This document shows, in pieces, positions 20,996 through 61,089 of a stretch of 64,000 bases of DNA (positions are counted from its first letter, which is position 1; each line of letters starts with the position of its first letter). A program made the translations under genes and the position numbers. This stretch comes from Blepharisma stoltei ATCC 30299 (taxonomy: Eukaryota; Protista; Ciliophora), in assembly GCA_965603825.1 (NCBI GenBank), contig CBFDEM010000028.1:620395-684394 (forward strand), read 5' to 3'. The notes below the pieces were generated by a model that saw only the letters and a program-made list of their open reading frames with translations, had not been told where the DNA came from and searched no databases.

Positions 20996-21039
20996 CAAAT
21001 TTTACTTTTCTTATTAATTTTTCACTGGCAAAATAAAAA

Positions 21040-29323: not shown

Positions 29324-32300
29324 TTATCTAATGTTATTTTCGTTTTCTGTGTTTGATGTTCCAATAATCATAATGATTATCGGGAATATCCAAATCAAAA
29401 ATGCTTTAAATGCTACCTTGGCAAATGACACCACAAACAAGTTGGTCCCATAGCTCACGCTGGTATTGCAAATTCATAAATAAGTAACGTTCAGTTCAAA
29501 TTGTATTGAAAATAATATGATAGACCAACAGAAATAAAATAGAAGCCCAAATGATATCAAGTAAAACGCAATAAGCTTAAAAAGGTTATTCTTTTTGATG
29601 CTTTTATACAATGTATCATCAGTTGAAGGCAGTGGAGTAGATTTGGATAAATAATTCAATAAAATCCCTACAAGCAGCATAATACTTGAAGAATAAACCA
29701 AAATCCAGAAGTCTTGAAAAGAGTAATTATTAAAAGCACTTGAAAAATCACCGATAGAATAGTCACTTCCTTTCGGCTTAGATTGGTAAAATAGTCCTAT
29801 AAAATACATATTTCCTAATAAAGTGATCATATAAGATGTCAAACGCGAAAAATGAGTGAAGTTTTCTTTATTTGTAAAAATGGTAACGAAATCATGATTT
29901 TTTGCAATAAAAATAAGTGCCCTTGTATATCTTTTGAGAGGTTTTTCTTCTTTTACTTGATGCTTGATATCTTTCACATTTATTACATCAGCCGTGTCGA
30001 GCTTGATTATTGACATATCAAAACTATTTTTTGTTTTTAGAGTAGTGTCAATACTCATTTCTTGGCTTTCTTTTATCCAGGTTGGAGATTCCTCACTTCT
30101 TGCAGTTTCCAATTTTTCATCTCTCGTACCTATTTCTGATTCATCTAAATCGAATTTAATTATTGTGCTCTTACGTTTCATTCTAACCCTTGGATCATCA
30201 TTTTTCCGGAGGTCATGCGAATTATTAGGATCAAGCTCAGGAGCGTTTTCTTTCTTTTTTCTTTCAAGACGATCCATATTACATGCAATTGCGCTGAGAA
30301 CTGCATAAATAAACAGAACTGTAATACAAAAATATAAGCCAATTGCATTAGTTGCCCAGTCAATATCATTAAAAGCATCGACGTTGACGGTATCTCCTAT
30401 ATTGCTCCCGCTAGCAGTTGACCATGCATCAGAGAAAAATGAAGAAAAAATAGTTAAATGGTTGCATGAGCAGATTACGTTGGTAGCGTTGTAGGAATCT
30501 AGGACACAGCCAGTGGTGTGTCAACGTGTCTCATTGTTTTCTAAATAGGTGCAATAAATGGGATTATCCTTTGTCACTGGGACATCGTAGTTGTGGACGG
30601 GAATATTTATGGTGTTATAGCTTGTATTGTTTAAGTGTACTTCTTGAAAAGTTATGTTGTTTATCAGTCTGTAAGAAACTAAGGAAAATGATGGTTTTAC
30701 AGTGATATCCAGTGCAGGATCATATATAGTGATTATAACTCCAATACCTTCATTTTCATTGAAGTAATCCGAAACATTATGGCCTAACGTAACAGAAGCA
30801 TTTTTTATTTGAGATGCATAATTAGATAATTCCGAAGATGTAGTTTTAGATACTTCTGTTGCAAATTTATCTTCAATAAACGTTTTCGACTCTCCAGTAA
30901 CCATTCCAGACAATAAAACAGTACTAATTTTCCTAACATTTTCATCAATAGTATTAACGGTATTTGTTTGGTTAATAGCCCCATTGCTATCTAATTGAAA
31001 ATTATTATCGCAAATTCCTGCAAAAACTTGCATTTGGCCGTCATCAATTGTAAGTTTATCATTATTTTTAATCATGAAGTCAGCAATGTCGCTTATTTTA
31101 TTAATATTATCATAGCTGTTTATATTAGGATTCAACGTGGCAACATAAAGCATATAAAAAACAGTGGTATAGGAGTCTTCGTTATATTTGTCCATGGCTT
31201 CAACATAAAGGTTGACTTTGTCAATAATTGAATCATAAGCACTTTGCATTTGGGAATCTACGTCAGAGTATTCGTTATTAATGATATTATCTCTATTTAA
31301 TACTAGCGCTGACAACTCGGATGCAAACCCAGGAACTGCTTGCGGGTTTAAAACTGGCAAATTCATGCGGTAATCGATATATTGGTCAATATTCGGATTT
31401 TCGTTAATTGTGACATAGGAAATTTTGTTGGTTTTTGAAGCCAAGGAGTCATAGATGTCTACTGAAATTGTAATATTTCCTGGAGAATAGGGGAAGTTTG
31501 TGAATATTAGAGAGGATAAATTTTTAGCAGAAATTGCTTGATAAGCATCAGAAATGTAGTAGCCGAAAGAGTATTGAAGTGGCAAATTGTTTTCTGGATC
31601 TTCCCAATTTAGTGCTGCCACTGTGAAAATCGTTGACATTTCTAGGCCTGAGCTGGGGACAACCATAAGTTTTCCATTATTTGGAGGGTTGTTTACATAA
31701 AATGTTCAGGTAAACGAAAACTCATTGTCAACAGAAGCAAGCAAAGTATAGGAGAAGCCTGAAGCCAATGAATTTGGAGGGATGACCAAATAATTAGAGT
31801 TCGTAGGAGTTGAATAAGAAATTTCTGATGAAGAATTTAATGACCAGTCAACTGAAGAGAATGTCCCTTTGATTTCAATTCTGTAAGTTGTATCAGGATT
31901 TGCGATGTTAGGGATTGAGCTGGATACTTCTACCATATTTACTGGAGGGACTGTCTTATTGATAGCTGTGATGGTTATGCTTTTTTGTGAACTTTTGGCT
32001 GTGCTGACAGGGTTTGTAGTTATTTTTGTGAAATTTAATGTGAAGTTGTAGACTGCGCCTAGAGTCAAAGTATTTGCTGGAACTATTAAAACAGAAGAGC
32101 TAAAATCATGAATAAAATCTGAACAACTAGTGGAAGAGCCATGAATTTGGCAGCTTCACTGGTATAAAAAGTTCGAATTATAGTCAGGATCATAAGAATC
32201 GCCTGCATCGACAACTAAGTTTTGGCTTACGCCTGAATCTCCATCAGTTCGATTAAAAACGATAATAGGGTCTGATGATTGAGTTTCAATTGAAAAACTT

Positions 32301-35300
32301 GTTTCTCCAGGAATATTATAAGTCAAATCTTTTGCAAAAACTTTGAAATCTATCGTAGACGAAGCAGGAAGGGTTTTTGGAGGAATATTCAGCAGATACT
32401 GAGACTTCTGAGCGCTCCAAAATGTGCTTTCGTCAATGCTTGAAGCATTATTGCTGACCCCAGAGATGCTTCACGTGATGTTTAAGTTATCAGAAATATT
32501 GCAAGAAGTTATTGATCCAACAGAAACCGTATATGATTTCAGCCTATCAAAGGAGCTGGCTAATAAAGGGTCAATATTTATTATAAGAGTAGGAGATGCT
32601 GTAGCATTAATTTCCTTGTCTATAGTCGAAATGCCTCCAAAATTATTTTTCATAGAAAAAGACGCATGAATAATTCCTTCAGTTAAATTTTCTTTTTTAA
32701 TGCTAAGCGCAGTATAAGAGTTACTATACTCAGTAGAAAAAGAAGAAATTACAGAGCTGGGGGGATTAGAAGAGAGTGTCCATTTATAAACCTCATAAGG
32801 CAGTCCTTTGTCAACAATCACATCTAATAAGAGATCCTGACATGATATCTCAAGAATCTTCGGAGCTATATATGTAAATTTTGGCGTTGGCACATCACCT
32901 TGCAAGGCTACAGGAATTGAGAGTTGCAGCTTCGATTTCCCACACAATGGAACTGAGCTTATTAGTGCCCCAGGCTTAAAAATTGCATTTTCTGTGCTAA
33001 AAGTGTAATCGTGTCCCAATAAAACTTTTAAAGAACTAAAATCTGATGCAAAGCTGCATGAATAGTCCAAACCAAAGCCTGCCAAAGTGGAAGAATCGAA
33101 CGATGAGCTGCAGTTGTACGGGGAACGGTCTGCTGGAATATTAAAGGTAAACTGAATTTCTGAATAACTATTTCTAAATGACGCAGCAATATTGGTGGTA
33201 TCCAAGTAGTTCACACATGCAATGCAGGTTCCTTGGTTCATATAGTAATAATTATTGCAAACACACTGATTTAGCGTTGAATCATATTTAGCATTAGCAA
33301 TATTGCAAATGCAGGTAGATCCTTCACGTGAAGCGTTTTCAGGACATTTGATGCAGAGACCATTATCTAGCCAATAATTAGCATTGCAAACGCATTTATT
33401 TGATGACGAATCATAGGATGCATTAGATATGCTGCAGGTGCATGTGGCTCCGTTAGGTATAGCATTTTCAGGACAAGTGGTGCAGAAACCATTATAGAGC
33501 CGATAGCCACTGTTGCAAACACATTGAGCCAGGGTAGAATCATATGAGGCGTTATCAATATTGCATATGCATGAAGATCTTTGAGGTGTTGCATTATCTG
33601 GACAGATAGTGCAGAAATCATTATAGAGCCGATAGCCACTATTGCAAGTGCACTTATTTGAGGTGAAGTTATATGAAGCATAAGGATCATTGCAGACACA
33701 TTGATTTGTAGAAGCATTATAGGTAGAATTGAGATCTTTGCAGACACATGTGGAACCTTCAGGTATAGAATCTTCAGGGCAATAGGTACAGAAACTTACA
33801 TAAAACCAAAAGCCGCTCTTGCAGGTGCATGGAGGCTGCACAGGGTCGCAATTGTCAATGCAAGCTAGGCAGCCACTCCAGTCATTACAAGAAGCGCATA
33901 ATGGGTCATCACACAAATTGCAGGTATCATCGTTTCTTACACAGCCTTTTGATGAGCAGGAGCTTGAGCACTGCAACCACGAAGAAGTTGAGGAGTTATA
34001 GTAGTTGCTAATAGGTTCATTTGCTAAACAATTGGGAGCATACCCAACTGGGCAAATTGTGCATCCTGGGTTGCAGTTATAAAAGACGTCATTTAAGGTA
34101 GGGTTCGTAGGGACGATTCATATATTCATACTGTAAATAAATCCGGTAAAAAAGTCGGAGTATGTTGAAGATGAGGCATGCTGAGCACCAATCAAAATAG
34201 AGTAGGCGATGCTCGAATCTTGTAAGGGACTTTTAGCTGGAGTTGCCATGTCTAACTGGCTGTTAATGTAAAATGTCACTTGCGTGTATGGGAAACTATA
34301 AGAAAGAGAAAATGCTGCATAATTTCAGCCTTGGGTATTAGTTTCATGATATGAAATATATGTTTGCTGTGAAAGAAAAGAGTGTACTACGACATATAGT
34401 TTTGGCAGAGATATGCTAACTTCTATCAAAGCTGCCATTGATGAATTTTGCTTTGTAAAAATAACTTGTTTAGTGCTTGAAGTAGTTGAGGTTGGCCAAA
34501 TCCATATAGAAAAAGTAATGGCGGTAGCAAAATTAAGAGAGTACGAACTATCATTTATATTTGGAGGCAATTGCATCAAAGAGTTGCCATTAAAGTAGTA
34601 CCCTCTTTTATATGCTGGGATAGGATCATAGCTATCATAGGTAGGGTAGAAACTATCTGAACTCCCGGATAGGACGTTAAAATTATTCACAGTATCTTTC
34701 ACGAGTCCTTCAATTTTATTCAATTTCAAAGAAAATATTAATCCTTGGTGGCTATCAAGCACACAGCTTCCAGCTTGATTCCCATTTGTTCCAGTTGGAC
34801 AGAAATTCATACATATGGACTGGAATTGCAAATTCGATGAGCAATAACAGGCAAAAACTAACGGATCTAGCACTGAAAAAGTGTAGGGGCATGCGCATTG
34901 GCCATCGATAAATAAGAAATCTCCATGGCACAGCCCACAAGTAGAAGTTCCAGTGCAAGTATCGCATCCTGTTAAGGAGCATAAGGTGCAGTCATTCCCA
35001 TTGGCGCATCCATGCATGCAGTTGCTAAGACAATTGACACAGTTAGAGTTTATATATTGATTATATTGGCAGTTTGTTGGTAGGCAGAGTAAAGAAGGAG
35101 GACATGCTGAGCAGCCTGCTGGGCATCCTGAAGTAATATATTCAGATAGAGAGATAAGATTTGGAGCATCACGGAAAGCATGAAAAAAATAAATATATCC
35201 ACTAAACCCTAAAGCCTTTCTGACAGCCCACTCAGGACAGGATCCAATATATTTCACATAGTTTGCGTCTGGATCAATATAAGTGTTTGCAAATGAAATA

Positions 35301-38300
35301 GTCATAAAAACTGAGCTAGAGTCAATGATCACCGTTTCAGTCAATTTTCCTACATCTTCTCTAAATATAGAGAAATAAATGTAATGCCAAGAGTTCAAAC
35401 TTAGTGTAGCTGGATTATTTACAAATGAAGAATATGAGGTCTTAAAATTTAAAGTTTGACTGCTTCCTTTATAGCTAAATCCATAATCTCTACCAACGTA
35501 AAAAATAGTATCTTCATTGGTAAAACCAGTAAAAAATATCCACAAAGAGACTCCAAAGAAATAGCTGAGCTTGTTTTCTGTAGAGACATAATCTGCAGGC
35601 TCAAAATATCATCCACGATTATTTACATAGTCAGCTCCTACAGCAGTATATTCAGATGGAAGGGTAGCAAGAGAATAGAAATCGAGGCTGATTGAAAATA
35701 CAGAGTCTTGATCGCAGCTGTTTGTTACAGAATTAGACAGAGTTCCAGCTGGGCATGACTTATAGCAAATCATTTGGTATAAAAAATAGCCTGGCTGGCA
35801 AGATGTGCAGTCGGAATAGGAAGTTGATAAACAGCTAGAACACCCTCTAGCGCACCCTGAGGTGCATGAAAACCCACCTGGGGAAGAAAACCCTGCAAGG
35901 CAAGCACATGGCGTTCCTGAAGCATTTTCTACGCATTCCGAGCATTGATCTCCAAATCCAGTGCAAATTTTACATAATGGATCCTTACAAATATTGCAGC
36001 TTTTGCCTCTTACACAACCATTATAGCAATTATTGCAGGTCACATAGTTTCCTCCTTCATTATACATAAATATATCGCATGCCCACAGGCAAGATGCATC
36101 CAATGTTATGCCACTACAAGGCATATTTGTAAAGAAATCTGTTGTTGCTTGATTTCACAATGTAAAAGCATATATAAACCCTACGAAAGAGCTCGTCTGG
36201 CTTTTTCCTAAAAGCAAGGTCTGTGAGCTGTTATCCCTGAACAGGGCATATTGAGTAGAAATTGTGTTTTTTATATCGCTATTTAAATAAAAACGGGCTT
36301 TGGCTGAGTCATCTACATATTCCATCGAGAAAGCAATATGACACCATCCAGAAAAATTTATAGGAGTAGTTACTAGTGTTGAGCTGCCTTTAAATGTTGT
36401 TAAAACTGCGTTTACTTTTAAGTTAGAACTTAAAGTAAAGGTGCCTATTTTATATATGACGTCGCCATCATCAATTGTGTAGATTCACAGTCCCATCGTA
36501 AATCACGAGCTAAGGTAAATAGGTGTTGTTGTATCTAAAAATTTTCCATTGGAAAAATAGAGGCCTCTGTTATATGCAGGAACAGGGTCTAAAGTTTCTG
36601 GGCTATTAAAAAAATAATAATTAGAATCTGACTGCGCAGTTCTAAAAATCCCGTAACTTCCTTGGAAGTCACCGTTGAACCATTGGTCAATCACTGGAGA
36701 TGTCTTACTGGCACAATCAGAATTACTGAAAAGCCCATAGGGGCATTCATTCAAGCAAACTTGATTTAGATAGACTCCACTTCCTGTGCAAGAGCTGCAC
36801 GTGAAATAATTATAATTAAGACAGCTTGTGCATAAGCTATCGCATCTTCCACAAGGATATAAATTTGTGTCACATTTACACGTTTTTGAGGAAGAATCGT
36901 AAACATAATTTTGCAAACAGGCGCACGTCGTCCCCGCTCCTGTAGCTCCAGCAACACAACTTGTGCATTCACTAGGTTGAAACCCAATTTCAGCCGCACA
37001 TAAAAGATCAACACTCATGCTACAATCTCCATTCCTCACACAACCATTTGTGCAAGAAGAGTCACAGTCAGTGCAGCTGGAAGTAGCGTTATTATAATAT
37101 TGCAAATAAGAGCAGCTGCGCAAGCATTCATTCCCAAAATCGCCACACGCAGGGCATAAACAAGTGGTTTTTATTAGTCCAGCAGCAATACTAGAGCTAA
37201 TTGCATAGTTATACAGAACCATCTCAAAAATGAAGCCATTGAAAAAGTAGTTTTCAATATTACTGCCACCTACAATAAAACTATCGCTCGGAATATCCAT
37301 AAAAAACGTATTTTGGTAGGCTATCAGGTTATTAATAGCTTGTGCTACTCCGTTTATATATAAAGAAATCTGATTAGTATGAGAAGTCCATGAAAATACG
37401 ATAATAATGTTGTATCATGCATTTAAATTAATATTGCCAGCCTCACTAATCATATTTTCAGCTGTCCCCGAAAGGTCATCATAAACTTCGTAGTTTACAT
37501 GCAATTTTCCAGTGGATAATATCTTGAAACCACTGTGCACTTGAGAGGCGTTTTCTTTTGAAAAAATGATTGAATCATTGGCTAAAGACGTAGGCCTGAC
37601 CCAGAATAGCAGACTGTGGTTATTGCCCAAAATCACTTCTTTAGAATCTGCAGAGTTTGGAGGTAGCTTAAGATATGAGTTTCCAGAAAAATAAAAGCCG
37701 GATTGATAAACTGGCTGTGGGTCATTAGGCCCTAAATAACTATCAGTTGACCCCATATAAGCTAATAACCCAGAAACATTATCTGCAAACGTATTTGCTA
37801 ATTTATTGAGCAAGTAATGAAGGACCATTGAATTTGCAGCTGTTTGCAGACAAGTGCCATCGGACTGCTTTGCATATCCCATAGGACATAGGTAAAGGCA
37901 AAGATTTTCTGGATTTAAATAATATCCCGATTTGCAGCTTGAGCAGTCTCCATTATGAGAGGACGAGCAGATTTCGCAAAATGGAAAGCAAGCACACTCA
38001 TTTGCTATAGGATCATAAATATAACCAGATAAACATTCGCAAGGAAAGTGGTTTGGCTTGGTTTTGGAAATGCAAGTCACACACCCAGTTCAGTCCTCAC
38101 AGACTTTGCATAGTAAATCATCGCATATGTTGCAGAAAACGTCATTTCTTACACAGCCAGTAGACTGGCACGAAGATCAGCACAAATTTCAAGTTGATGA
38201 TGAAGAATCGTAATAATTTGAGATAGGCTGACTTGGCAAGCAAGATGAAGAAGATAAAGGGCAAAAAGAGCAGCTGGAGCCACATGAGTAAGAAATATCA

Positions 38301-41300
38301 TATAGAGTTGGGTTTACGATAGTATTTCATATTTTTATACTGTAGACAAAGCCTGTATAAAAGCTTGAGTAGGCAGAAGAGCCTGTGTGCATTGCTGCAA
38401 TTAATATGCTGTAGTTAGAATCTAAGTCTTGGAATGGGTGCTTTATGATCTTAGGGGTGTCAAAGCTGCTATTGATATAATAAGTCACCTGACTGTATGG
38501 AAATTTATAGCTAAGTGAAAACCCTATATAGCATCAACTATCAGCATTGATAGAATTTCTGGAAGTAAATGATACTGAAGAGCTTAACATAGAATCATAA
38601 AAGCTAAGAATAATTTTAAGTCCTACTATCTTGATTGATAGATATGTCGTATAAGGGCCATCAGAACTCTGCTTAGCTAAAATGACTCCATTTTCATTTT
38701 GAGACCAAAGTCACATTGAGTATGAAAAATCTGCGGCGATAGTCAGAGATTTGGAGCTATTATCTATATTTGGAGGCAACTGCATAAAAGAATTTCCATT
38801 AAAATAATATCCTCTCTTAGAAGCTGGAATAGGATCATATGCATCATAACTAGGATAGAAATCGCTGGAAATTCCAGCCAAAACATCAATTCCACTACTA
38901 GAAGAATCATGGACTATTCCTTTTATTTGAGTTAGAGCCAATGAAAATACAAGTCCTTGACTGGCATACAATATGCAGGCTCCAGATAAATTATCAGAGG
39001 TTCCTGTTGGGCAGGAACTTACACACACAGAATTAAAAGTTAGCGAAGACGTACAGTTGCATGTGAACAAATCTGGATCCTTAACTGCATAGGTATAAGG
39101 ACATTGGCAATTGTTATCAATAAATACGAAATCCCCTTTGCATGATCCACAAGTATTTGTCCCAGTACAACTATTGCATCCAGTCATAGAGCATAAAGTG
39201 CAGTCATTTCCATTATTACAGCCATTTATGCATGCGCTGTTGCATGAATGGCATTCTGAATCATAGTATTCATTATAGGCGCAGTTAGTAGGCAAGCAGA
39301 ATGACGATGAAGGGCATACTGAGCAGCTAGGGCAACTTGAACTTGGAATCTCATTGCTTGGAATATCATATAGGCCATCGTTATAAACATGAAGCCAATA
39401 CATGTACCCAGTAAAACTTGTATATCCTCGATTATTCCAATCGAATTGAGTGCCAATATATTTGCTACCTCCTTTGTCTTGAAAAATAAAATCACTTGCA
39501 GGAGTTAGGCTATCATGAGTTAACGAAGTAGAATCCAATGTAATTAGTTGCTTAATAGTGCCATCACTGTTATGAATGGTTGAAATGAACAAAAAGTGCC
39601 ATGTGTTTATATCTAATGCTGACAAACTTTGTGCTTGAGATCATACAATAGGTCCTGTGTTGAAAACAAGCTGCTTATTGCTACCGTTATAGCTTATTCC
39701 CCAATCCCTACTCATATAGAATATAGTATCTATACTAGTGTATGCTGTAAAACAAATCCACATTGATATAGTTATATAGCTGCTGAGTTGGACACTGGTT
39801 GAAATATAGCTTTGAGGAAAGAAGCGCCAGCCTCGGTCACTTATAAAGTAAGGGGTTTTACCTGAGGCGGATGAATAGCTAGAAGGTAGGCTTGCTAATG
39901 CATAGAAATCAAGGCTTATAGACATTGGGAAATCTTTATCACAAGTTTTTGTCACTGAATTTGAAATGGTTCCTTGTGGACAAGTTGTGTAGCAAATCAT
40001 TTGATATAAGAAATAGTTCTGTGCGCAAGATGTGCAGCTTGTATACGAAGTTGACAAGCAGCTAGAACACCCAGTAAAACATTTGAGAGTGCATGAAAAG
40101 CCATCTGGAGATATATAATTTGCATTGCAAGCGCATGGGTTTCCAGAAGCATTGTCTACACAAGCAGCGCACATTCCGGACCAAAATCCACTGCAAGCAG
40201 AGCACAAAGGATCGTAACAAATATTGCATGAATATTTTCTGACGCATCCAGTATAGCAGTTATTGCAGTATAAGCAAGAGCTATCATTTTGGCTATAATA
40301 TTGATTTATATCGCAAGTTTGCAGGCATGAAATTGACAGAGCTGATCCACAAGGTCTTGAAAGTTCACTAGTCAAATCAGTTATCACAGCATTTCAGAAA
40401 GTGAAGGAGTATATAAATCCTATAAAAGTGCCAGTTGGGCTCCCTCCTAAGTATAAAGGAGAATCTCCGCTGTCTCTAAATAAATAATATTTCGCAGATT
40501 CTGCTGCTTTGAGTTGGTCATTTATATATCCATAAATTTGTGTGTAGCCATTTGAATACCCAACAGATACAAACAGATAAGTCCATCCTGAAAAAGTCTG
40601 GCTGCCCACTTGCTTTGTAAAACTATTAGTCGCTAAAGGATCTGTCAAATAAACAGAAAATCCTGCATTTGAGTTTAGCGATATCTGTCCTTGCTTGCTC
40701 AAAATCGTCCCTTCGTGTAGTGCATAAACCCATAGCCCAAGCGAAAACCCAAAATTAATATAAACATTTTGGCTTGTCATTAAATATTTCCCATTATCGA
40801 AATAAAGACCCCTACTGTAAGCAGGGATTGGGTCACCTAAGTCTGGACTATTAAAAAATTGATAAGTGGCGCCTGAAACTGAAGTCAAGAAATTATCATA
40901 ATTTCCTTTAAAGCTGCCATCAAATGTTATGTTAAATTTTGGAGATACTGAGCTTGAGCAGGGGTTAGTTAAAAAAGGGCAATAATTTAAGCATATACCA
41001 TCCACAAGATATAGACCGTCATTGCAGCTAGTGCAGTAAAAATAATAAGTTCCTCTGCAAGTTTTACAATTGACATCGCACAAGTTGCAAGCTTCATCTA
41101 TCCAAATTGCATTGATTTTGCATGTGCAAATCCCGTTAACCAAGCTTGCATTTTCCACACAATTGATACACTCTTCATCAAATGTGCTGCACGTGGAGCA
41201 TTCCTTATAAAGGCAAAGTTTGCAGGTATTGCTAGAGCGGCATCCTTGATCGCAGATATCTAAGCATGGGTCGCAAACAGTTGAATTAAGATAGGATCCA

Positions 41301-42736: not shown

Positions 42737-43353
42737 ATGAACTCTAAATTATTATATATAAATAAAATTAATTTTAATCGCCAAAAACATTAAAAAAGCA
42801 ATGCTCTCTCATCATAAATTTTTATTGTCCATTTTTGTCAACAGTTATGATCATAAAGAATTAAATTTAGTTTAGATAATAGGATTAAAACTGTTGAAAA
42901 TTAATGATTTCCTCAGCTTCGACTCAATTAATTTAAGCATCCTGCATTATGCATTAAGGACTTATTTTTTAGAGGAATTTATAATCCCAACCTTAATAAA
43001 GCTAAAACAAAAAACTTAAATTCACAATTATGCATGCATTTGATTATAATAATCTTTTGATTTTTCAAGCTATTTTATTTAGACTGAAATCTTTGAGGAT
43101 TCTTCATTTATAGCCCAATAAGGTCTTATGCCGCATTTAATAAGTAAGTAATTTTTACTCTTTAGCCATTATAGAAAGGCAAAGCAAAGGGCAAATATTA
43201 TTCTTTCTTTAATTTCTTCGAATATTACTCATGAATTGATTATTTATCGACGCCATTCGTATTATTAGAATGCAAAAATTAAATCAAATATCTATTAGAA
43301 ATTTTTTATAATATTTTTATAGCTTTAAAGATTAAAATAAATATGCTTAATAT

Positions 43354-49300: not shown

Positions 49301-52300
49301 GAGACATAATCTGTAGGCTCAAAATATCATCCACGATTATTTATATAGTCAGCTCCTACAGCAGTATATGCAGATGGAAGAGTAGCAAGAGAATAGAAAT
49401 CGAGACTGATTGAAAATACAGAGTCTTGATCGCAGCTGTTTGTTACAGAATTAGACAGAGTTCCAGCTGGGCATGACTTATAGCAAATCATTTGGTATAA
49501 AAAATAGCCTGGCTGGCAAGATGTGCAGTCAGAATAGGAAGTTGATAAACAGCCAGCACACCCTCTAGCACACCCTGAGGTACATGAAAATCCATCTGGG
49601 GAGGAAAACCCTGCAAGGCAAGCACATGGCGTTCCTGAAGCATTTTCTACGCATTCCGAGCATTGATCTCCAAATCCAGTGCAAAATTTACATAATGGAT
49701 CCTTACAAATATTGCAGCTTTTGCCTCTTACGCAGCCATTATAGCAATTATTGCAGGTCACATAGTTTCCTCCTTCATTATACATAAATATATCGCATTC
49801 CCACAGGCAAGAAGTGTCGAGTACTGCACTGCAAGGCTTAGATAATTGTGCTGAAAAATCAGTCGCCAGCTGATTTCATAATGTAAATGAATAAATAAAC
49901 CCTACAAAGGAGCTTGTCTGGCTCCCTAGGAATAAAGACTCAGAGTTGGCATCTCTGAACAAGGCATATTGAGTTGTAAGTGTAGTTGATAAGGTACTAC
50001 CAAGATAAAACTTCATAACTACAGAGTCTGATGTATAGGCCATTGAAATAGCGATGTAAGTTCAGCCAGTGTAAGGTATAGGAGTTGTCGAAATGCTAGA
50101 GTTTCCTTTGAATGTGGTTAATGATACTGATGCAACTAAACTAGAGCTCAAAGTAAAGACACTCCCTTTTGAAACTATAATTCCGTTGAAGATCGTATAT
50201 GTTCAGAGCCCTATTGTAAGCCAAGCGTTAAGATAAATGGGGGTAGCCGAGCACAAATACTTCCCGTTAGAAAAATAAAGGCCTCGCTGATAAGCTGGAA
50301 TGGGATCGAAATTTTCTGGGTTATTGAAAAAATAATAATTCGTATCTGACTGCGCAGTTTTAAAAATCCCATAGCTCCCAAGGAAATCTCCGTTAAACAA
50401 TTGGTCAATGACTGGAGATGCATTACTGGCACAAACAGAATTGCTAAAAAGTCCATAGGGGCATTCATTCAAGCAAACTTGATCTAGATAGACTCCACTT
50501 CCTGTGCAAGAGCTGCAAGTGAAATAATTATAATTAAGACAGCTTGTACATAAGCTATCACATCTTCCGCAAGGATATAAATTTGGATCACATGTACATG
50601 TTCTAGAGCTAGAGTCATAAACGTAATTTTGCAGACAGGCGCACGTCGTGCCTGCTCCTATTGCTCCAGTCACACAGCTCGTACACTCACTAATCTGAAA
50701 TCCAGTTTCAGCTGCACATAAAGGATCAAGACTCATGATGCAATCTCCATTTCGCACACAGCCAAATTGACATGAAGAATCACAATCAGCACAGCTAGAT
50801 GTAGCACTATTATAATATTGCAAATAAGAGCAACTGCGCAAACATTCATTTCCAGAATCGGCGCATGCAGAACACATGCAACCACTTGTAATGCTCTGAA
50901 TGCTAATCACATAGTTATATAAGGCCATTTCAAAAATAAAGCCAGTATAAAAAATTCCTTCAGCTTTGCTTGCTCCTAGAAGAAAATTATCGCCAGAAAT
51001 ATCCATAAAATAGGAATTTTGAACTTGAGCAAAACTCTCATAAGTATCGAGGACTCCATTAACATATATTGAAATTTGATTACAATGAGGTGTTCATGAT
51101 AATAGGATAACAATATTATATCACCCATTATTAGTGATAGAACTTGCTTTGAGGTGGATATTATTAGACGCCATTGTGGTGTCATCATAGACTGCATAAT
51201 TTACGTAGGGATTGCTATTTGAGTCAATCATGAAGTAGCTATGAATTTGTGAAGCGTTTTCTTTTGAATAAATAATACCACTAGTGCTCGAAGATGTAGG
51301 TCTGATCCAGAATAGTAAACTATGATTATTTCCCAAAACAACTTCTTTAGAGTCTACAGAATTTGGAGGCAGCGAAACGTATGAACTCCCAGAAAAATAG
51401 AGTCCAGATTGATATATAGGCCATGGATCATTAGGCCCTAGATAAGTATCTGTTGAGCCCATATAGGCCAAAAATCCGGAAACTTTGTCTGCAATAGTAT
51501 TTGTTAACTTAGTGAACACATAATGAAGAACTATAGAGTTAGGAGATACTGCTGTGCATGGGCTGCCAGATACTTGTGTATATCCTAAAGGACAAGTAGA
51601 TAGGCAAAGATTTTCAGGTGTCAAATAATAGTTAGAGTTGCAGCCAGAGCAGTCCCCATTATGTGAAGAAGTGCACACACTGCAGAAAGAAAAGCATGCT
51701 GTGCACTGATTTGCTGATGAGTCATAATAAAAGCCTGATGCGCATTGGCATGGGAACTGAGATGGTTTTGTGTTTGCCTTGCAAGTTTTGCAGCCAGTCC
51801 AGTCTTCACAAATATCACACAAATTATCGTCGCATAGGTTACAAAAGCCGTCACTTCTAACGCATCCAGTCGATTTGCAAGAATCTGAGCAAGCTTTCCA
51901 TGAAGATGACGAGAGGTCATAATAGCTGGAAATTGGTTGGTTCGGGAGACAAGAAGAGGAGGCCAATGGGCAAAAAGAACAGCCGGAATCGCATGTATAA
52001 GAGAGATCATACAGAGTGGGGTTTACCACAGTGTTTCATATTTTCATACTATAGATGAATCCTGTATAAAAATTCATTCATTCATCGGAATTTTTGTGAG
52101 TTGCTCCAATTAAAATAGTGTAGTCGCTGATCAAGTCTACAAACGGGTGCTTTAGAACAAATGGAGTATCAAAGTTGCTATTAACATACCAAGTTAATTG
52201 GTTATAGGGAAATTTATATCTGAGTGAAAATCCTATATAGTACCATCCAGAAGTATTAATAGGGGCACTAGAACTGTAGGAATAAAGGGAATTTAAAATT

Positions 52301-55300
52301 GGGTCATGAAAGCTAAAGAATGCTTGAAGGGAAGATATCTCGATTGATAGATATATTGAATAAGGGTAGCCATCACTCTGCTTAGTAAAGATGACCCCAT
52401 CCCCTCCCTGAGGTCATATTCACGCCGAGTATGAAAAGTCTGTTGCAAAATTAAGAGAATAAGTGTTGTCGTATGAGTGTGGTGGCAGCTGCATAAGCGA
52501 ATGTCCGTTAAAATAATACCCTCTCTTATATGCTGGAATTGGATCATAAGGATCGTAATTTGGATAGTAATCACTAGAAATGCCAGCCAAGACTTTAATA
52601 TTGCTATCAGATGAATCTACCACAGTTCCTTTAATTTGATTAAAAGCCAATGAAAGTACGAGTCCTTGACTAGCTTGCAATGTGCAAACTCCAGATAAAT
52701 TATCTGAAGTTCCTGTTGGGCAGGAACTTACACATACATCATTGAATTTTAACGAACTTGAGCAAATGCAAGTGGAGGAAGCTGTGTTGCTGACTCAAGT
52801 GTAAGGACATTGGCATTCCCCATCAAGGAATACATAATTTCCTATGCATGATCCGCAGGTGCTTGTCCCAGTGCAAGTGGCACAACTAGTTATAGTGCAT
52901 AAGATACAGTCATTACTGTTACTGCAGCCATTAGAGCAGCCATTGCAGGAAAGACATCCTGAGTTATAATAATATTGGCTATATGGGCAAATTCCAGGTA
53001 AGCAGTATAGTGATAAAAGACATAATGATGAGCAGCTAGGACAATTTGAGCTGGCAGGCTCATAGTTTGGAGTATAATATAAGCCATCATTATATACATG
53101 GAGCCAGTACATATACCCAGTAAAGCTCGTGTAACCTCGATTATTCCAATCGAATTGAGAGCCAATATATTTGCTACCGCCTTTGTCTTGAAAAATAAAA
53201 TCACTTGCAGGAGTTAGACTATCTTGAGTTAACGAAGTAGAATCCAATTGAATCAGCTGCTTAATAGTGCCATCACTGTTATGAATGGTTGAAATGAACA
53301 AAAAGTGCCATGTGTTTATATCTAATGTTGACAAACTTTGTGCTTGAGATCATACAATAGGTCCTGTGTTGAAAACAAGCTGCTTATTGCTACCGTTATA
53401 GCTTATTCCCCAATCCCTACTCATATAGAATATAGTATCTATACTAGTGTATGCTGTAAAACAAATCCACATTGATATAGTTATATAGCTGCTGAGTTGG
53501 ACACTGGTTGAAATATAGCTTTGAGGAAAGAAGCGCCAGCCTCGGTCACTTATGAAGTAAGGGGTTTTACCTGAAGCGGATGAGTAGCTAGAAGGCAGGC
53601 TTGCTAATGCATAGAAATCAAGGCTTATAGACATAGGGAAATCTTTATCACAAGTTTTTGTCACTGAATTTGAAATGGTTCCTTGTGGACAAGTTGTGTA
53701 GCAAATCATTTGGTATAAGAAATAGTTCTGTGCGCAAGAGGTGCAACTTGTATAGGAAGTTGACAAGCAGCTGGAGCATCCAGTAAAACATTTGAGAGTG
53801 CATGAAAAGCCATCTGGAGAAATATAATTTGCATTGCAAGCGCATGGGGTTCCAGAAGCATTGTCTACACAAGTAGTACACATTTCAGACCCAAATCCTG
53901 TGCAAACAGCGCACAAAGGATCGTCACAAATATTGCATGAATTTTTTGTCGTGCAGCCATTATAGCAATCATGGCAATATTTATAGCCTTGTAAATCTTT
54001 ATATTGGTTGACATCACAACTTCATAAACATGATACATCCCCTACACTGCTTCCACAAGGCTGTGATAGCTGACTTGAAAAATCACTCGTGACTTCATTT
54101 CACAATGCAAAAGAGTAAATGAACCCAACAAAAGAACCAGGAAGACGTGCGCCAACATTTATCAGCGATGATGAAACTCTAAATATTTTATTCTGAGTCA
54201 GTGTAGCAGTGTTTTGCTTCGAGCCATTCTTATATATGGATACAGGAACTGTATCTTGGCTGTATGAGACAGAAAAAGATAAATAATATCATCCGTAATA
54301 ATCTGCAGGAAAAGAAATTGACTCTCCTAGGAGTGTAATACCCATATCTGAATTGATTGACAATGAATCAGTCGTCCATGCAAAAGTGCCATGAAATATG
54401 ACATAGATTCAGAAGCCTATAGAAAATCATGAATTTAAGGTGATACTTTGGGTTGTTACAAGATAGGAGCCTTGATAAAAATAAAGACCTCTATTTTTGA
54501 CTGGATAAGGGTCTTGAGCTTCTGGGCTAATGAAAGGCTGATAGGAAGAACTAGATGTAGCAGTTTGAAATATTCCGTATAAACCTTGAAAGTTACCGTT
54601 AAACAATTGGTCAATCACTGAAGAAGTTGGGCTTATGCAAGGGCTGCTGAATCCATATGGGCAGCTGTCTAAGCACACCCCATCAACAAGAACTTTCCCT
54701 GCAATGCATAAATCGCACAAATAATAATAATTTCCCGTACATTGACTGCAGTAAGAGTCACATGAAATACAGTAAGGCCACGTTGAATCGCATACGCATG
54801 CCAATGTTTGCAAGTCATAATGCATATGCGAAATACAGTTGCATTGTGTTCCAGCGCCACTAGCATTGGTTATACAACTTGTGCATTCACTAATTGCAAA
54901 TCCAGTTGCTGAGACACACAATGGATCCAAATTCATATAGCAATTCCCATTCCTCATACAGCCAGTTGCGCATCCTCCATCGCAGCCTTTGCAACTTCCA
55001 TCATAAAATTCATTGAATGCGCACGGTCTCAAGCAGTCATTTCCACTATTTGCACAATCAGAGCATCCACAATTATTAGAAGGAGCTTGGTAAGTTATTG
55101 CGTAGTTATATATGCTAATTTCATAGATAAAGCCCTTAAAGTAAAGAGAGTGCTGAAAACTGTATCCTACTATGAAATTTGAGCGTGAAAAGTCTATGAA
55201 CATCGAGTTTGTGATGGAATTTATATTGGTAGCTTGGACTTGGTTAATATAAAAAGAAAATCCTGGGGCATAAGAAGTGCGCTGGAAAATCACAATAATG

Positions 55301-58300
55301 TTTTGTCAATAATTTCAGCTTAATTGTGACGAAGCTTCGGAATATATGTAGCCTTTGTATGATGCTGTAATATCATCATACACATAATAAGTAACTTCAA
55401 AGAGGAGCGAGTCATTAATTGATATATAGAAAGAGTCACTTGAAAGCTCTTTGGATATCAAGTATTGAAGATTAGAAGTGGATAAAGGTCTGAATCAAAT
55501 CAACAAGCTATGGGCATTACCTAAAACTGCTTCTTGCTGATCTGCTGAATTCGGAGGGAGCTTCATATAGGCTTGCCCATTAAAATAAAGCCCTGATTGA
55601 TAAATTGGATAAGGATCATTAACATCAAAATTCCCCATATACTGGTCGCTTGACCCCATATAAGCTTTATATCCACCCACTAGATCTGAAACTGTATTCG
55701 TTTCTTTATTAAAAATATAATGGATAGCCAAAGCGCTTGCCCCACTGCAAGGATTCCCTGAATATCCTAGAGGACACGAAGGCAAGCAAAGACCTCCTGG
55801 ATTAAGATAATACCCACTTTTGCACGTCAAGCAGTCTCCATTGTGCTGTCCAGAGCAAGTATCGCATCCCAATGCGCATGCTGAGCATGCATTGTTGAGT
55901 CCATCTAGATAATATCCGCTTGCACATTTACTGCAGCCTGCAAATGTTTGAGCAGTGCATGTCACACAGTTGGAAATGCAAGGGACGCATGAGCATGGAG
56001 TAGTGACTAAGAAAGTGCCTGTTTGACAGTTATTCATGCAACTTATACAGCCAGTTCAATCGTCACATAAGGCACAGAGCTGATTGTCACATAGGTTGCA
56101 GGCTGTATCGTATCTTACACAACCGAGATTATCGCATGAGGATGAACAGGCGCTCCACAATTGTTGTGTAGTATCATAATACATGTTTATTTGAAATGGC
56201 TGGAGGCAATTTGGCGTATATGAGGAAGGGCAAAAGTTACATTCTGAGCAAGTTGAGGAAACTTCAGGGGAAAGGTTTATTATTATGTTTCATATTTTTA
56301 TGCTGTAAATAAACCCAGTTAGCATAGCAAGCAAGGTCTGTTGGGAACTGTACTTTGCTCCTATTAAGATGGTGTAAGAGCTTTCAATGTCAAGGAGAGG
56401 GCCTTTAGCAGGAATAGCCAGATTTGTGAGAAAATTTTCGTAAAAGGTAACTTGGTTATATGGGAAGCTGTAAGATAAAGAAAATCCGACATGGTGCCAA
56501 TTAGTAGTTGTTAAGCTATTTTGCGAGTAAAATTGCTGTGAAGTGCTTGTTTCTGACGAATAAACATTAACAAATAATTTTAATGCTATCAGTTCAAAAG
56601 AAAGGTAAACTGTAAAAGGACTCGCAGAGGCTTGCTTAGCCAGAATCACTCCATTATTAGCCCTTGGTCACATTCACACAGAAACAGTCACATGGCTGCT
56701 AAAGTAGAGAGAATTTGTATTCATCACACTGTTTGGAGGTAACTGCATCAAAGAACCTCCATTAAAGTAGTAGCCCCTGCGATATGATGGGATTGGGTCA
56801 TAGCTTCCATAAGTAGGATAAAAATCTGTAGACGTTCCAGCCAGGACCTGGAAACTGTACACCTTGTCTATGACTATCCCCTTAATCTGATTAAGAGTCA
56901 GCGAAAATATGAGCCCAGCGTTTGCATCCAAAACGCAAGTTTCTGAAGTTGCATCATAGCTGCTACCAGTCGGGCATGAAGAAATGCATAGAGACTGGTA
57001 ACTTATAGTTTGACTGGAACAGCCACAAGTAGATTCTGTGGCGTTTAATACCGAGTAGCTATAAGAGCATCTGCATGTGCTGCCAATAAATTTATAGTCG
57101 CCAGAGCATTTTCCACAAACATTTGAGCCTGTGCACGTCAAGCATCCTGGAATTGAACAAAGATTGCAATCATTTGGATTATAGCAGCCATGCGTACAAG
57201 TAGCAAGGCATAAATAACAAATGGAGTCAGTTGAGTTATAGTATTGCGTAATAAGGCAATCAGATGGCAGGCACATTGACGTAGTGGGGCATGCTGAGCA
57301 TCCACTGGAGCACCCTGATTCATGGAATTCGCTTTCATAAATGTTATTTGAGCCATCGTTATAAACGTGAAAATAATACATAAACCCAGAAAAACCCGTT
57401 TTCCCCTGCTTGCATCAGTCATACTGGCATCCAATATATTTCGTATATGATTTATCCCTATATGTATAATCGCTAGTTGGCGAAAAATTCTGAAGCACAC
57501 TAGTTGAGTCAATCTTTACCAGCTGATCTACAGTGTCTCCATCGTAATGAATAATTGATGTATAAATATAATGTCACTTGTTGGAAATTAATAATGATGA
57601 CAAGCTGTCCAAGTCTGGCCATTTGACGTACCCAGTACTAAAACTTAACCCTTGACTGGTTCCATTTAAGTTCATGCCTCAGTCTCGGCTTATATAGAAA
57701 ATCATCGCAAAATCAGCATTTTGGGAGATGTAAATCCAGGTCGAAATCGTAAAAAAATCAGGGATCTGATAAACTGTTGAAACAAAGTCATTTTTTCCAA
57801 ATTTCCAGCCTCGATCAGTGGCATAGGTAAGTTGAGATGACGAAGAATACCCAGTAGGCAGGCTTGAAAGTTGAAAAAAGTTGAGTATGATAGAAAATGG
57901 AGAATCTTGGTCGCAGGACTTTGTGGATAAATTTGAAATTGTTCCAGTAGGGCAACTGCTATAGCAAATCATTTGGTATAAATAATATCCTGACTGGCAT
58001 GAGGTGCAGCTAGAGTATGAAAGTGAGGTGCAGGTCAAACAGCCAGGATAGCATAATGATGTGCAAGCTCCTGATATAAGGGTAAATCCGGGATTGCAGT
58101 TGCAAGTGGTTCCTGAAGCGTTATCAATGCATGCTGTGCATAATCCAGACCCAAACCCACTGCAATTAGCACATAGAGGATCATTGCAGATGTTGCACGA
58201 GTCCTCTCTGACACAGCCATTATCGCAACTATTACAGTATAAGCAAGAACTGCTGCTTTGGCTATAGTATTGATTAATAGCACATGTAAGTAAACAAGAA

Positions 58301-60702
58301 ACAATTAAGCTAGTCCCACATGGTCTTGAAAGTTGACTAGATAAGTCAGTTATCACAGCGTTTCATAGTGTAAAAGAATAAATAAATCCAGTAAAAATGC
58401 CTGTTGGACTTCCCCCTAAGTATAAAGGCGAAGCGCTATCTCTAAAAATGTAATCATTTACTGATTCTGTCAGCTTTAATTTATCATTTACGTATCCATG
58501 TATTTGGGCAATCCCATTTGAATAGCCAACAGATACAAGCAAATATGTCCATCCTGAGAAAGAATAGCCTCCCACTCGCTTTGTTATCCAATTGCTATTT
58601 GCAGGATCTGCTAAAAACACAGAAAGCCCTCCAGTGGAATTAAATGCTATTAAGCCTTGCTTGCTAAAAATATCTCCATCATAGCTAGCGAACATCCAGA
58701 TTCCTAGAGAAAAGTCAAAATTAATATAAACGTCACTATTTGTCATCAAATATTTTCCATAAGCAAAATACATACCTCGCTGATAAGCAGGGATTGGATC
58801 AGCTGTATCTGGATTATTGAAGAACTGGTAAGTCTGATCCGAAGTTGAAGTCTGAAATATCCCATAAATCCCTTTAAAACTGCCATCAAAAGTTAAATCT
58901 ACTATTGAAGACGAACCGCTGGTGCATGGATTACTAGAAAATCCAGTAGGGCATGCGTTTAAGCATATTCCATCTACAAGCTCCAAGCCACTATTGCAGT
59001 TAGTACAATAAAAAAAATAATCTCCTTTGCAAGTTGCACAATTTACATCGCACAAATTGCAAGCTCCTTCTAGCCACAGTGCATTACTAGTGCAAGTGCA
59101 GACTCCATTATTCATATATGCATTTGCTGTGCAACTTATGCAAGTTCCATCAAATGTGCTGCATTTTGAGCATGCTTTATCAAGACAGAGGTTGCAAGTA
59201 ATAGTGCTGCGGCACCCGTTCACGCACCCAGAGCACGAGATGCAAGAAGTAGAGTTAAAATAAGAGCCAAATGAGCACGTGTCAGGGCACTTTAAATCTG
59301 AAGGACAGTTTGAGCATCCACCAGTGCAGCCAGAAGTGACTCATTCAGAGAATTGGTAATAGCTGTCGCTGAAAAATATGATTTTATAGAGGAAGCCTTC
59401 AAAACTATTTGATAAAGAGGAATAGCCGATTGCCAGTTTTCCAGAATCACTAAAGGGATAAGCAGCGGCTGAAATATCCCAGACTATGAGAGATCCATTT
59501 ATGTATAAAGCCACATATGTGCATCCATTACTAATTACTTTTCCAATAGCAGCAATGTTTTGCCAAGACTTTGTTGATATAGGCCCTCCAGAAATTGTCA
59601 ACTGAGAAGCATCTTTAAGCCTTATTGCAATTATCACATTAGAATTTCCATCAAGTTTCATACTGAAATAACTTGTTGCACTGCTTTGATCATATTTCAG
59701 CGCTATTGAGCCTCCTAACGATTCAGGATTTATTCACAAATTTACCGTAAAATAAGGAGAGATAATTAAGTTGTCATAAGTAATTAGAGAATTAGAGTAA
59801 AAGTAATATCCTCTGTATATAGAAGGGATCGGGTCATTGGTATCTCATTGAGGATAGGGATTCGGCTGGCTTCCAACTGTAGCGAGGCTTATATAGTCAA
59901 TTAATATTTGGTTTTGAAAAGAAAGGTTAAGAGAATATATTGAATCCTGCACACAAAATTGATGGGCCAGGTCAGTTTTGTAGCCTGATGGGCAAGCAGA
60001 TAAGCATAAACTATTTAATAAATAATAGCTACCGCTGCAGGCAATACATTCAAAATAGCCTGAACCGCTGCAAGCTGAGCATTCAGGGCTGCAGGTAACT
60101 AAATGCCTTTGTGAAATGCAATTATCATCTGGCCACATTCATATAGGGCAATTTGGGCTGCATTTTTTGCAATCTTTAAGGCTTATAGAGCTTCTATCGA
60201 AACAATAATCGGCTGAGGGATAATTTCAAGTTTCTCCAAGAGCCAAAAATCCTTTAAAACCTTCTCTAGAACTTTTTATGCTACCAATAAGCCAAATTAA
60301 TAAGTTCTGCCCTTTGTTTAAGTGCTCCAGCAAAAACCCATAAGTAAAGAAAGAATTATCATCTATCATTCAAGTGCAGCTTCTGCTTGTAAGCGCTTTT
60401 TCTTCTCAAAAAATTGTCAAGGCTTCTAAGCCTCTTGTGGAGTCTCTGTATTGAAGCACAATTTCATAATAAATTTTATGTAAATCTGAGCTGATAATCA
60501 TCCTTTCTTTGGTAATTACTAAAGAAAACTCATTAAAAGGGCATTTAGTAGCATCTAATAAATTGCAAAGATTCTGGCTACTGTAATCTCCTTTTTCTAA
60601 AAGGCAGCCAATACAACTTAAAGAATCAGAGCTTCCACATTCTCTATTACACATGCTGAGTATTTTCGGAATTTGAAGAAGTACAAAAAATACTAGCAGC
60701 AT
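43354..60702 (-). CDS. Giant polycystin-1-like receptor B (~5782 aa): SP, 12 LamG-like + furin-like Cys repeats, EGF-like stalk, REJ, GAIN/GPS, ~5 TM
   Basis: More than 20 track ORFs in one frame from ATG 60702 (MLLVFFVLLQIPKILS) to TAA 43354. DSSNSYDPD..FQWSC (REJ); CTFLD..RWQSTGC...CKCNHLSIF (GPS). Collinear paralog of gene A. Confidence 0.88.
47800..59300 (-). repeat. Coding super-repeat of ~4.2-4.3 kb (four LamG-like modules), 2.75 copies in gene B; 1.75 copies in gene A (~34000-41300)
   Basis: Motifs F(D/N)G.F.G.Y, L(D/N)F..L..LP, L.FSL....I.G and HY.F.K....YMGS recur in the same order; first motif near 58880, 54600 and 50395. Confidence 0.8.
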
Positions 60703-61089
60703 ATGATATATAGCTTATTATTATTAAATAAACATAAAATGAAAATACTCTCCCTTTTTGGAATCTGAAATATTAATCAAATCTACTCCAAAGCAATCTT
60801 AAATATTTTACAAAATCCTACTTCTTTTATTATTTGACCTTAAACATTTTTGTCGACAAACTATTAAGGTAAGACTGCAATTATAATAAATATTTAAGAT
60901 CAAGATACTGCATTATAAGACATAGCAAGATATATAGCAATAAGCTTGATTGGTGAAAGATAGTTTAAAAGTTTGGCTTGAGCTGAAAAGCTAATAAGCT
61001 ATAAATATTAATTAAATAATGATATTTTTATTTGCATATTCTTTATAGAAAGAGTTTATCTTTCTAATGAATCTACTTATTATTTAATT

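Follow-up and report, generated by a model that had tools for sequence, protein, structure and literature searches.

The window analysed here, 64,000 nucleotides of the ciliate Blepharisma stoltei ATCC 30299, is the terminal stretch of a contig from the macronuclear genome. It contains two giant genes in tandem on the reverse strand, called gene A and gene B in this work. Probably, A and B are expressed, tandemly duplicated genes for giant membrane receptors with the N-terminus outside, built on a free-standing N-terminal half of polycystin-1 (PC1). The two proteins share one layout. A signal-peptide-like start leads into a series of repeat units, followed by a stalk rich in Cys and by REJ and GAIN domains; the membrane part consists of a first transmembrane (TM) helix TM1, a loop and four further TM helices, and the chain closes with a short tail. 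The observation of a half of PC1 that is free of channel and PLAT domain is confirmed by the analysis below, and its structural interpretation is supported; a receptor function would be in keeping with such a structure. The positions of all features are collected in Table 1.

Table 1. Features of genes A and B and of their surroundings (window positions; aa, amino acid residues; CDS, coding sequence; TRF, Tandem Repeats Finder; pLDDT, predicted local distance difference test)
Feature	Position	Strand	Basis and remarks
Gene A, TAA/TAG-free frame	29327-42748	-	13,422 nt, frame scan
Gene A, intronless CDS	29324-42736	-	4470 aa and TAA stop; 25 in-frame TGA (= Trp)
A, hydrophobic N-terminus, aa 1-19	42680-42736	-	Kyte-Doolittle peak 2.22, conserved in B
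A, 8 basic units of ~340 aa = 2 super-repeats of 4 (aa 221-2980)	33797-42076	-	Unit BLAST, Cys periodicity, Laminin_G_3
A, Cys-rich stalk, aa 2981-3411	32504-33796	-	TRF, Cys counts; 43-aa (129-bp) tandem repeats at 33291-33694
A, REJ, aa 3412-3780	31397-32503	-	PF02010, 92 bits on full-length public protein; collinear matches on three TGA-split pieces
A, GAIN, aa 3781-4105	30422-31396	-	GPS C-N-H-L-T at 30452-30466; predicted cut L4094/T4095
A, TM1, aa 4132-4164	30245-30343	-	Hydropathy; model helix 353-385
A, cytoplasmic charged loop, aa 4165-4265	29942-30244	-	pLDDT ~30, no Pfam match; at the PLAT position of PC1
A, pre-TM2 helix and TM2-TM5, aa 4266-4459	29360-29941	-	Model helices, conserved family block; then 11-aa tail and stop
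Spacer, gene B stop to gene A start	42737-43353	.	AT-rich, GC ~0.30, 0.6 kb, stop codons present
Gene B, TAA/TAG-free frame	43357-60714	-	17,358 nt, frame scan
Gene B, CDS	43354-60702	-	5782 aa and TAA stop; 45 in-frame TGA
B, 12 basic units = 3 super-repeats of 4 (aa 221-4390)	47533-60042	-	BLAST, Cys periodicity, super-repeats
B, REJ, ~aa 4717-5085	45448-46554	-	Placed by alignment to A; PF02010, 47.6 bits on piece 45895-46518
B, GAIN	44473-45447	-	GPS C-N-H-L-S at 44503-44517; PF01825, 33.4 bits
B, TM1, ~105-aa charged loop and TM2-5, aa 5437-5770	43393-44394	-	Hydropathy, sequence; then 12-aa tail
High-identity tract 1 (probable gene conversion)	A 39404-40100 with B 53113-53800	-	94-100% DNA identity; adjoins junction ~40270
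High-identity tract 2 (probable gene conversion)	A 35604-36003 with B 49322-49722	-	94-100% DNA identity
Neighbour gene, 939-aa E/K-rich coiled-coil protein	26263-29079	-	No TM helix, no TGA codon, soluble, directly downstream of gene A
Neighbour gene, 601-aa RING-finger protein	21037-22839	+	

The macronuclear genome of this strain uses UGA for Trp and contains tiny introns of 15-16 bp (PMC9942806). Neither TAA nor TAG occurs in the frames of A and B, while the two remaining frames of the reverse strand contain 197-303 of these codons over the same stretches. The first ATG codons, at 42736 in A and at 60702 in B, open homologous hydrophobic N-termini; residues 1-19 of A are likely a signal peptide, as predicted from hydropathy alone. 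It is important to establish how the TGA codons inside the frames are read. The matches of the Pfam REJ profile continue in collinear order across three successive pieces of A that are bounded by TGA (profile positions 69-117, 154-289 and 307-416), 20 of the 22 aligned TGA codons of A are paired in B with TGA or TGG as Trp codons, and the TGA at residue 4072 of A encodes a Trp of the GPS motif that at least 90% of the family members in the alignment retain. Thus TGA is a sense codon for Trp in these genes. TGA and TGG are interchanged between A and B 8-10 times. The original prediction, made from the sequence of the window, had proposed two giant frames hidden by the use of UGA for Trp, each with a signal peptide at its start. 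The frames and their hydrophobic starts are borne out. The word hidden is appropriate for a reading in the standard code only, as gene A is already public as a model of 4470 residues.

B is 50-74% identical to A. At the first two codon positions 75-86% of the nucleotides agree between the copies, at the third only 53-66%. Since codon position 3 diverges most, both genes are under purifying selection. This observation is directly relevant to the possibility that A and B are decaying or silent subtelomeric pseudogenes, or a single gene that was assembled incorrectly. Such an explanation might account for the location of the genes within 20 kb of the telomere and for a public model of gene B that is shorter than its frame. 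However, both frames are fully open, the divergence is concentrated at position 3, and the TGA codons are found at conserved Trp positions. Incorrect assembly is also difficult to reconcile with a spacer that contains stop codons, with the signal-peptide-like start that gene A has of its own and that is homologous to the one in B, and with the occurrence of the same sequence in a second public assembly, where it is split by probably germline-limited segments. We assign next to no probability to this explanation.

The REJ and GAIN domains are recognised in both genes. The Pfam GPS profile (PF01825) gives 25-33 bits across A and B. A profile built from the 690 residues that follow the REJ domain in A, with 23 family members, matches solved GAIN domains including that of latrophilin (E 1e-11). 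The same profile, which covers GAIN and TM helices, gave GAIN domains only when compared with the sequences of the Protein Data Bank (PDB) and no match for the TM part. A structure model of residues 3780-4470 of A was calculated from an alignment of 23 sequences (pLDDT 74.7). The GAIN domain of this model is closest to the GAIN domain of BAI3 (4dlo_A, Z 20.7), and the adhesion-receptor GAIN domains fall in the range of Z 17-21. The cleavage motif is canonical in both proteins, HL/T in A and HL/S in B, and the conserved Cys and Trp residues of the GPS motif are present. The intact site suggests that the GAIN domain would cleave itself.

A linker of ~40 residues connects the GAIN domain with TM1. 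The loop that follows TM1 is rich in Lys/Arg and Asp/Glu, is modelled as disordered (pLDDT ~30), and varies in length and sequence across the family. It is followed by an amphipathic pre-TM2 helix and by TM2-TM5. The TM region of B is 61% identical to that of A. The topology agrees with the positive-inside rule, and N-X-S/T sequons are located in the predicted outer loops between TM2 and TM3 and between TM4 and TM5.

The comparison of this membrane part with known structures is the key to the interpretation of both proteins. Among the candidates found with Foldseek and aligned again, residues 333-675 of the model superpose on residues ~3063-3621 of PC1, skipping the PLAT domain and the long loop between TM3 and TM4. 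In the UniProt numbering we take this section of PC1 to run from TM1 to just past TM5. The superposition was obtained with nine cryo-EM entries of PC1/PC2, with Z-values of 15.6-16.9 over 181-209 aligned residues and a residue identity of 15-17%. In an exhaustive alignment with 48,161 PDB representatives, PC1 (Z 16.5) was the only chain among the top 50 that matches the membrane part, while the holoreceptors of the adhesion G-protein-coupled receptors (GPCRs) match the GAIN part only. A profile of TM2-5 built from 31 sequences also has PC1 as its top match among PDB sequences. This match, weak at E 0.076, is made up of two stretches in collinear order, one from the pre-TM2 helix through TM3, including K-H-x-L, and the other in TM5; the consensus of the pre-TM2 helix is K-H-x-L-x-x-I-F. 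The fold and the profile match, preceded by REJ and GAIN domains in the order found in PC1, argue for homology with the N-terminal half of PC1.

The domains that are expected further along the chain of PC1 were not found in A or B. The PLAT profile (PF01477) has no match on the loop at E 0.1, on the last 348 residues of A at E 0.01, or in the paralogues; it also has no match in the whole genome, in a search that had no positive control. No other Pfam domain matches the loop at E 0.1. The PKD_channel profile (PF08016) has no match on contig C28 or in the window, and neither a six-TM channel half, nor a TOP domain, nor a C-terminal coiled-coil tail is present in A or B. A channel half in the downstream gene was considered and rejected: the open reading frame (ORF) at 26263-29079, downstream of gene A, has no TM helix, and the proteins themselves end 11-12 residues after TM5. 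A 7TM receptor was rejected as well. There are five helices only, the 7tm_2 Pfam profile does not match, and the TM part fits PC1 and not the adhesion-GPCR holoreceptors, so that these proteins do not have the 7TM_2 domain that follows GAIN in class B2. A shape search of the ESM-Atlas brought up adhesion GPCRs at a TM-score of ~0.4 only, driven by the GAIN domain. The original prediction had listed REJ and GPS domains, a charged loop of about 100 residues after TM1, a stop after about five TM helices, and the N-terminal architecture of PC1 without PLAT and channel half; each of these features was recovered, and the TM1-5 fold of PC1 was the sole match for the membrane part. Of the findings that would have refuted the prediction, namely stop codons inside the frames, a lack of REJ/GPS matches, or a C-terminus folded as 7-TM or channel, none was encountered.

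Several points weigh against the interpretation as receptors built on half of PC1. The likeness of the TM helices to PC1 is derived from a predicted model of pLDDT 74.7, calculated from 23 sequences, and from a profile match of E 0.076. In addition, we infer self-cleavage, ligand binding, localisation, signalling, a PKD2-type partner and the biological role. PC1 binds polycystin-2 through its channel half and its C-terminal coiled coil; because these elements are absent in A and B, a PKD2-like partner is not implied by the homology.

A further point of this kind concerns the public gene models. The translation of gene A from its first ATG is identical to an unnamed public protein of 4470 residues (P0001; NCBI, UniRef). 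In the public assembly GCA_914767885.1, gene A spans 19.3 kb, and ten additional segments of 136-1627 bp, ~5.9 kb in total, break up its coding sequence (window 32400-41580). At least five extra segments are found in the 3' 6 kb of gene B (window 44346-49470). These segments are probably germline-limited eliminated sequences, which would need precise excision. The gene upstream of A in this record has a product of 4773 residues, at variance with the 5782 residues of the gene B frame. The difference is 1009 residues and residue 1010 of the frame is Met, so the public model of gene B appears to start at the internal Met1010. It would then lack residues 1-1009 (window 57673-60702), which contain the signal-peptide-like start together with repeat units one to three, and gene B probably needs a longer model of 5782 residues with a signal peptide.

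Public contigs that derive from four runs of a single study map to both gene bodies and contain no splice joints; none of them lies on the spacer at 42700-43300. These contigs fit two separate transcripts and do not prove them. The runs are RNA by guess and are stored as contigs, which are silent on transcript ends and on expression level. Therefore transcription and the ends of the transcripts are not proven, which is also to be counted against the interpretation given above.

The ectodomains are very large, with ~4100 residues in A and ~5400 residues in B. They are composed mainly of basic units, each consisting of a Cys-rich segment and a lectin fold of the ConA/LamG type, and the density of Cys has a period of ~340 residues. 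With a single unit of A (1600-1950) as query, BLAST found eight copies in A and 11 in B, with 22-29% identity between non-orthologous units. The 11 copies in B, together with the Cys periodicity and the presence of three super-repeats of four, lead to 12 units in this protein. Compared as whole blocks, the sets of four units have 42-74% identity among themselves.

The full-length protein of gene A is matched by the Pfam profile Laminin_G_3 (PF13385) in four stretches with 145 bits. The unit was also modelled with AlphaFold from an alignment of 20 rows (pLDDT 84.7). The model has a jelly-roll core at residues 34-276, and the remainder consists of small disulfide-rich hairpins. Its closest structural match is the carbohydrate-binding domain of the arabinan-binding AbnA (5hon_B, Z 20.9), followed by the sialic-acid-binding CBM40 modules, the pentraxins and the laminin-G/neurexin LNS domains (Z 13-17). 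It also matches the lectin-like sub-domain of the clostridial neurotoxin binding domains. This match is a property of the shared fold and is thus uninformative on toxicity. The jelly-roll that is characteristic of the Laminin_G_3/ConA-like lectin superfamily is present in the unit, which may bind sugars.

The LamG/ConA-like domains of the original prediction are therefore confirmed by sequence and by fold, while its other names for parts of the ectodomain need some correction. The units have a conserved Cys pattern, as the designation furin-like would imply, but the Furin-like Pfam matches are below threshold (E 6e-4 to 5e-3), and both these and the GF_recep_IV matches in gene A are weak. The stalk was described as EGF-like. 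It is indeed rich in Cys, but no Pfam profile matches the stalk of A (residues 2975-3415) or the first 230 residues of the protein even at E 0.1. Tandem repeats of 43 residues are found in the stalk instead, and we do not call it EGF-like.

The two genes of the window are members of a larger family. A HMMER scan of 1.84 billion representative proteins with the last 348 residues of A found 67 members. The named ones belong to B. stoltei and Stentor coeruleus, so that the proposed extension of the survey to Stentor gave a positive answer, and the others come from metagenomes and transcriptomes. The same distribution is found in the names of 20 representatives, which are from Blepharisma, Stentor and otherwise unnamed environmental or transcriptome records. 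A word-indexed search for a wider taxonomic range returned Stentor and Blepharisma only, and a feature search of the atlas returned unnamed ciliate clusters. Nearly all members that reach TM5 end 12-72 residues after it. The exceptions are two short fragments with 150-190 residues more, and one match consists of GPS and TM1 only. The ectodomains vary within the family (LamG, TIG, PA14) and the REJ-GAIN-5TM part is constant. The TM2-5 block is the most conserved part across Blepharisma, Stentor and the environmental sequences, with residues H, G, F, Y, D, F and W present in at least 90% of the members.

Genome-wide counts were made in the assembly of the window itself (41.46 Mb in 64 contigs). 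The TM2-5 profile identifies 31 loci, ~10 of them close relatives of A and B and ~20 distant; most of the distant ones lie beside other REJ loci. REJ is found at no fewer than 52 loci of this genome and PKD_channel at no fewer than 35, and in no case does a channel domain come after a REJ locus on its strand. Two of the distant giants, at C25:322000-331000 (a frame of 9202 residues) and at C37:116000-124000 (a frame of 5879 residues), end right after TM1, the loop and four TM helices. The architecture REJ-GAIN-5TM is thus a trait of the family, which has ~31 loci in this one ciliate.

The two distant giants contain no TGA codon at all, compared with 25 in A and 45 in B, and their GPS-like site is H-F-S and not H-L-T. 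The metagenomic protein P0064 (879 residues) has a GPS motif and a TM1 similar to those of the family, followed by a C2 domain (86.6 bits), a different lipid-binding beta-sandwich, which is located roughly at the place of PLAT in PC1. Two of the 31 REJ-5TM loci, C54:612399-626297 and C58:568025-578508, lie within ~10-11 kb of PKD_channel genes. In the second of these the REJ-5TM and channel genes share a strand, and the channel gene lies upstream. Two out of 31 loci give a weak hint that the two halves of a polycystin system are linked, and this was not counted as evidence.

In the literature accessible to this work, no paper was found that links Blepharisma or Stentor (heterotrichs) with REJ or polycystin-1-like proteins, and no description of the TM1-5 homology or of the family size was found. 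A public model of gene A, which carries no name, was already available, and its paralogues have domain labels that were assigned automatically. GAIN domains of Tetrahymena have been noted since 2012.

It is important to compare these proteins with better characterized systems. PC1 and the PKD1-like proteins with 11 TM helices (PKD1L1-3, PKDREJ and the sea-urchin suREJ3) have the same order of REJ, GAIN with HL/T/S, and TM1-TM5. However, in A and B a disordered loop of ~100 residues is found where PC1 has its PLAT domain after TM1, and the large cytoplasmic loop between TM3 and TM4 is absent, as are the TOP domain, the channel-like half with its six helices and the tail with the coiled coil. 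The PKD1-like features retained are therefore the REJ domain, the GAIN domain and the TM1-TM5 bundle, and those not found are PLAT/LH2, the channel half and TOP. The ectodomains also differ. That of PC1 contains leucine-rich repeats, a C-lectin domain and PKD-Ig repeats, while A and B have the ConA/LamG-type and Cys-rich units described above. Adhesion GPCRs (latrophilin, BAI, ADGRG) have the GAIN fold and the GPS motif in common with A and B, and some of them also contain lectin-like, pentraxin or LamG modules. The logic of an N-terminal and a C-terminal fragment with a tethered stalk is the same, but A and B do not contain 7TM_2. Animal receptors with REJ/GPS and no channel half are also known, namely suREJ1 and suREJ2 of the sea urchin, with 1-2 TM helices, and the PKD1-like s-Themis-A of Ciona, with five TM helices; they act in gamete or self recognition. 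As these proteins are described, their ectodomains are small, and s-Themis-A keeps its PLAT/LH2 domain.

The known ciliate proteins that are closest in general plan are Paramecium mtA and mtA-like and Tetrahymena MTA, MTB and MRC1. These are large surface glycoproteins which, like A and B, have five C-terminal TM helices, and A and B might be the heterotrich counterparts of such 5-TM mating-type or adhesion receptors, serving cell-cell recognition in conjugation and not sensing of the polycystin type. The published descriptions give the same overall plan, an ectodomain with Cys-rich growth-factor-receptor-like and beta-sandwich parts followed by five C-terminal TM helices (PMC10901506; bioRxiv 10.1101/2024.10.01.616003), and the weak GF_recep_IV and Furin-like matches in gene A point in the same direction. 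However, the likeness is one of published descriptions only, these papers mention no REJ or GAIN domain in proteins of this type, both of which A and B possess, and the family searches returned only Blepharisma, Stentor and unnamed environmental sequences. We regard this alternative as quite improbable. It would be compatible with the half-PC1 interpretation if the 5-TM domains of the mating-type proteins were also polycystin-1-like.

The history of the tandem pair can be followed in some detail. A and B are collinear, except that A has one super-repeat less. The first 600 residues of the first super-repeat of A resemble the first super-repeat of B and the remainder resembles the second, with the junction at ~40270. 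The background DNA identity between the genes is 73-78%. The two tracts of 94-100% identity stand out from this background and suggest that the tandem copies have recently undergone gene conversion and recombined unequally; the tracts themselves are probable gene-conversion tracts, as judged from the alignment.

Gene conversion is typical of surface arrays, and this raises the possibility that A and B are structural or adhesive proteins of the surface coat, in which the GAIN domain and the five TM helices would serve as a mere anchor and shedding device with no signalling. The huge and repetitive ectodomain, the difference in the number of repeats between the two copies, and the short or disordered cytoplasmic parts would all be in keeping with such a role. 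However, the most conserved part of the family is the TM2-5 block, with individual residues retained in at least 90% of members, and this is beyond the need of a passive anchor. A surface-coat function without signalling is considered very improbable.

With A and B understood as receptors built on the N-terminal half of PC1, a mechanism can be proposed. The lectin-type array would bind glycans or the surface of a partner, which could be prey, substrate or another cell. The GAIN domain would cut itself, and the huge N-terminal fragment would stay attached non-covalently to the 5-TM fragment. A pull on the N-terminal fragment, or its shedding, would expose the stalk of ~40 residues. The exposed stalk could then change the 5-TM bundle and the cytoplasmic loop and give a signal through a separate effector, for which the numerous PKD2-like channels of other loci in this genome are plausible candidates. 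The two gene copies, which differ by one whole super-repeat, probably continue to exchange sequence through gene conversion. Given the PKD_channel loci counted above, a partner of the PKD2 type is possible.

A more far-reaching proposal is that the REJ-GAIN-5TM proteins of heterotrichs are an unfused PC1 that acts in trans with separate PKD2-like channels, and that the PC1 of animals arose by fusion of the two halves. This proposal we hold to be unlikely. Within it, the same 5-TM transducer may also underlie the mating-type receptors of ciliates and would then be an ancient eukaryotic device of cell-surface recognition.

The surroundings of the two genes identify the end of a macronuclear contig of this organism. 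The last 1.9 kb of the window (62071-64000) are filled by 241 copies of GGTGTTAG, which is a permutation of CCCTAACA, the macronuclear telomere repeat of B. stoltei (PMC9942806). Database records also name paralogues of A and B as B. stoltei proteins. With only 1.4 kb between the telomere and the start of gene B, the two giant genes have a subtelomeric location on this contig. Between gene B and the telomere, at 61100-61560 on the reverse strand, there are short ORFs with TPR-like repeats, for example 61193-61408, which may be a small or decayed TPR gene. Two neighbouring genes on the other side of the pair are listed in Table 1.

The paper on Pkd2 of Paramecium reports that there is no Pkd1 homologue in Paramecium (PMC6627415). 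In view of the heterotrich family, this statement cannot be taken to apply to ciliates in general. What the TM1-5 bundle does in PC1 is, to our knowledge, poorly understood, because in animals we know of this bundle only as fused to PLAT and the channel-like half. The bundle alone, behind REJ and GAIN domains, would therefore be a natural minimal system for the function of TM1-5 and of the GAIN-tethered stalk, and RNA interference is available in Stentor. The family would also provide a dated comparison point for the question whether PC1 was assembled through fusion or through loss. In practical terms little is gained beyond a longer model of gene B and a family that deserves a name. We know of no identified cell-contact receptor in Blepharisma, and the family of A and B supplies candidate surface receptors that may serve the recognition of glycans, prey or partners in this organism.

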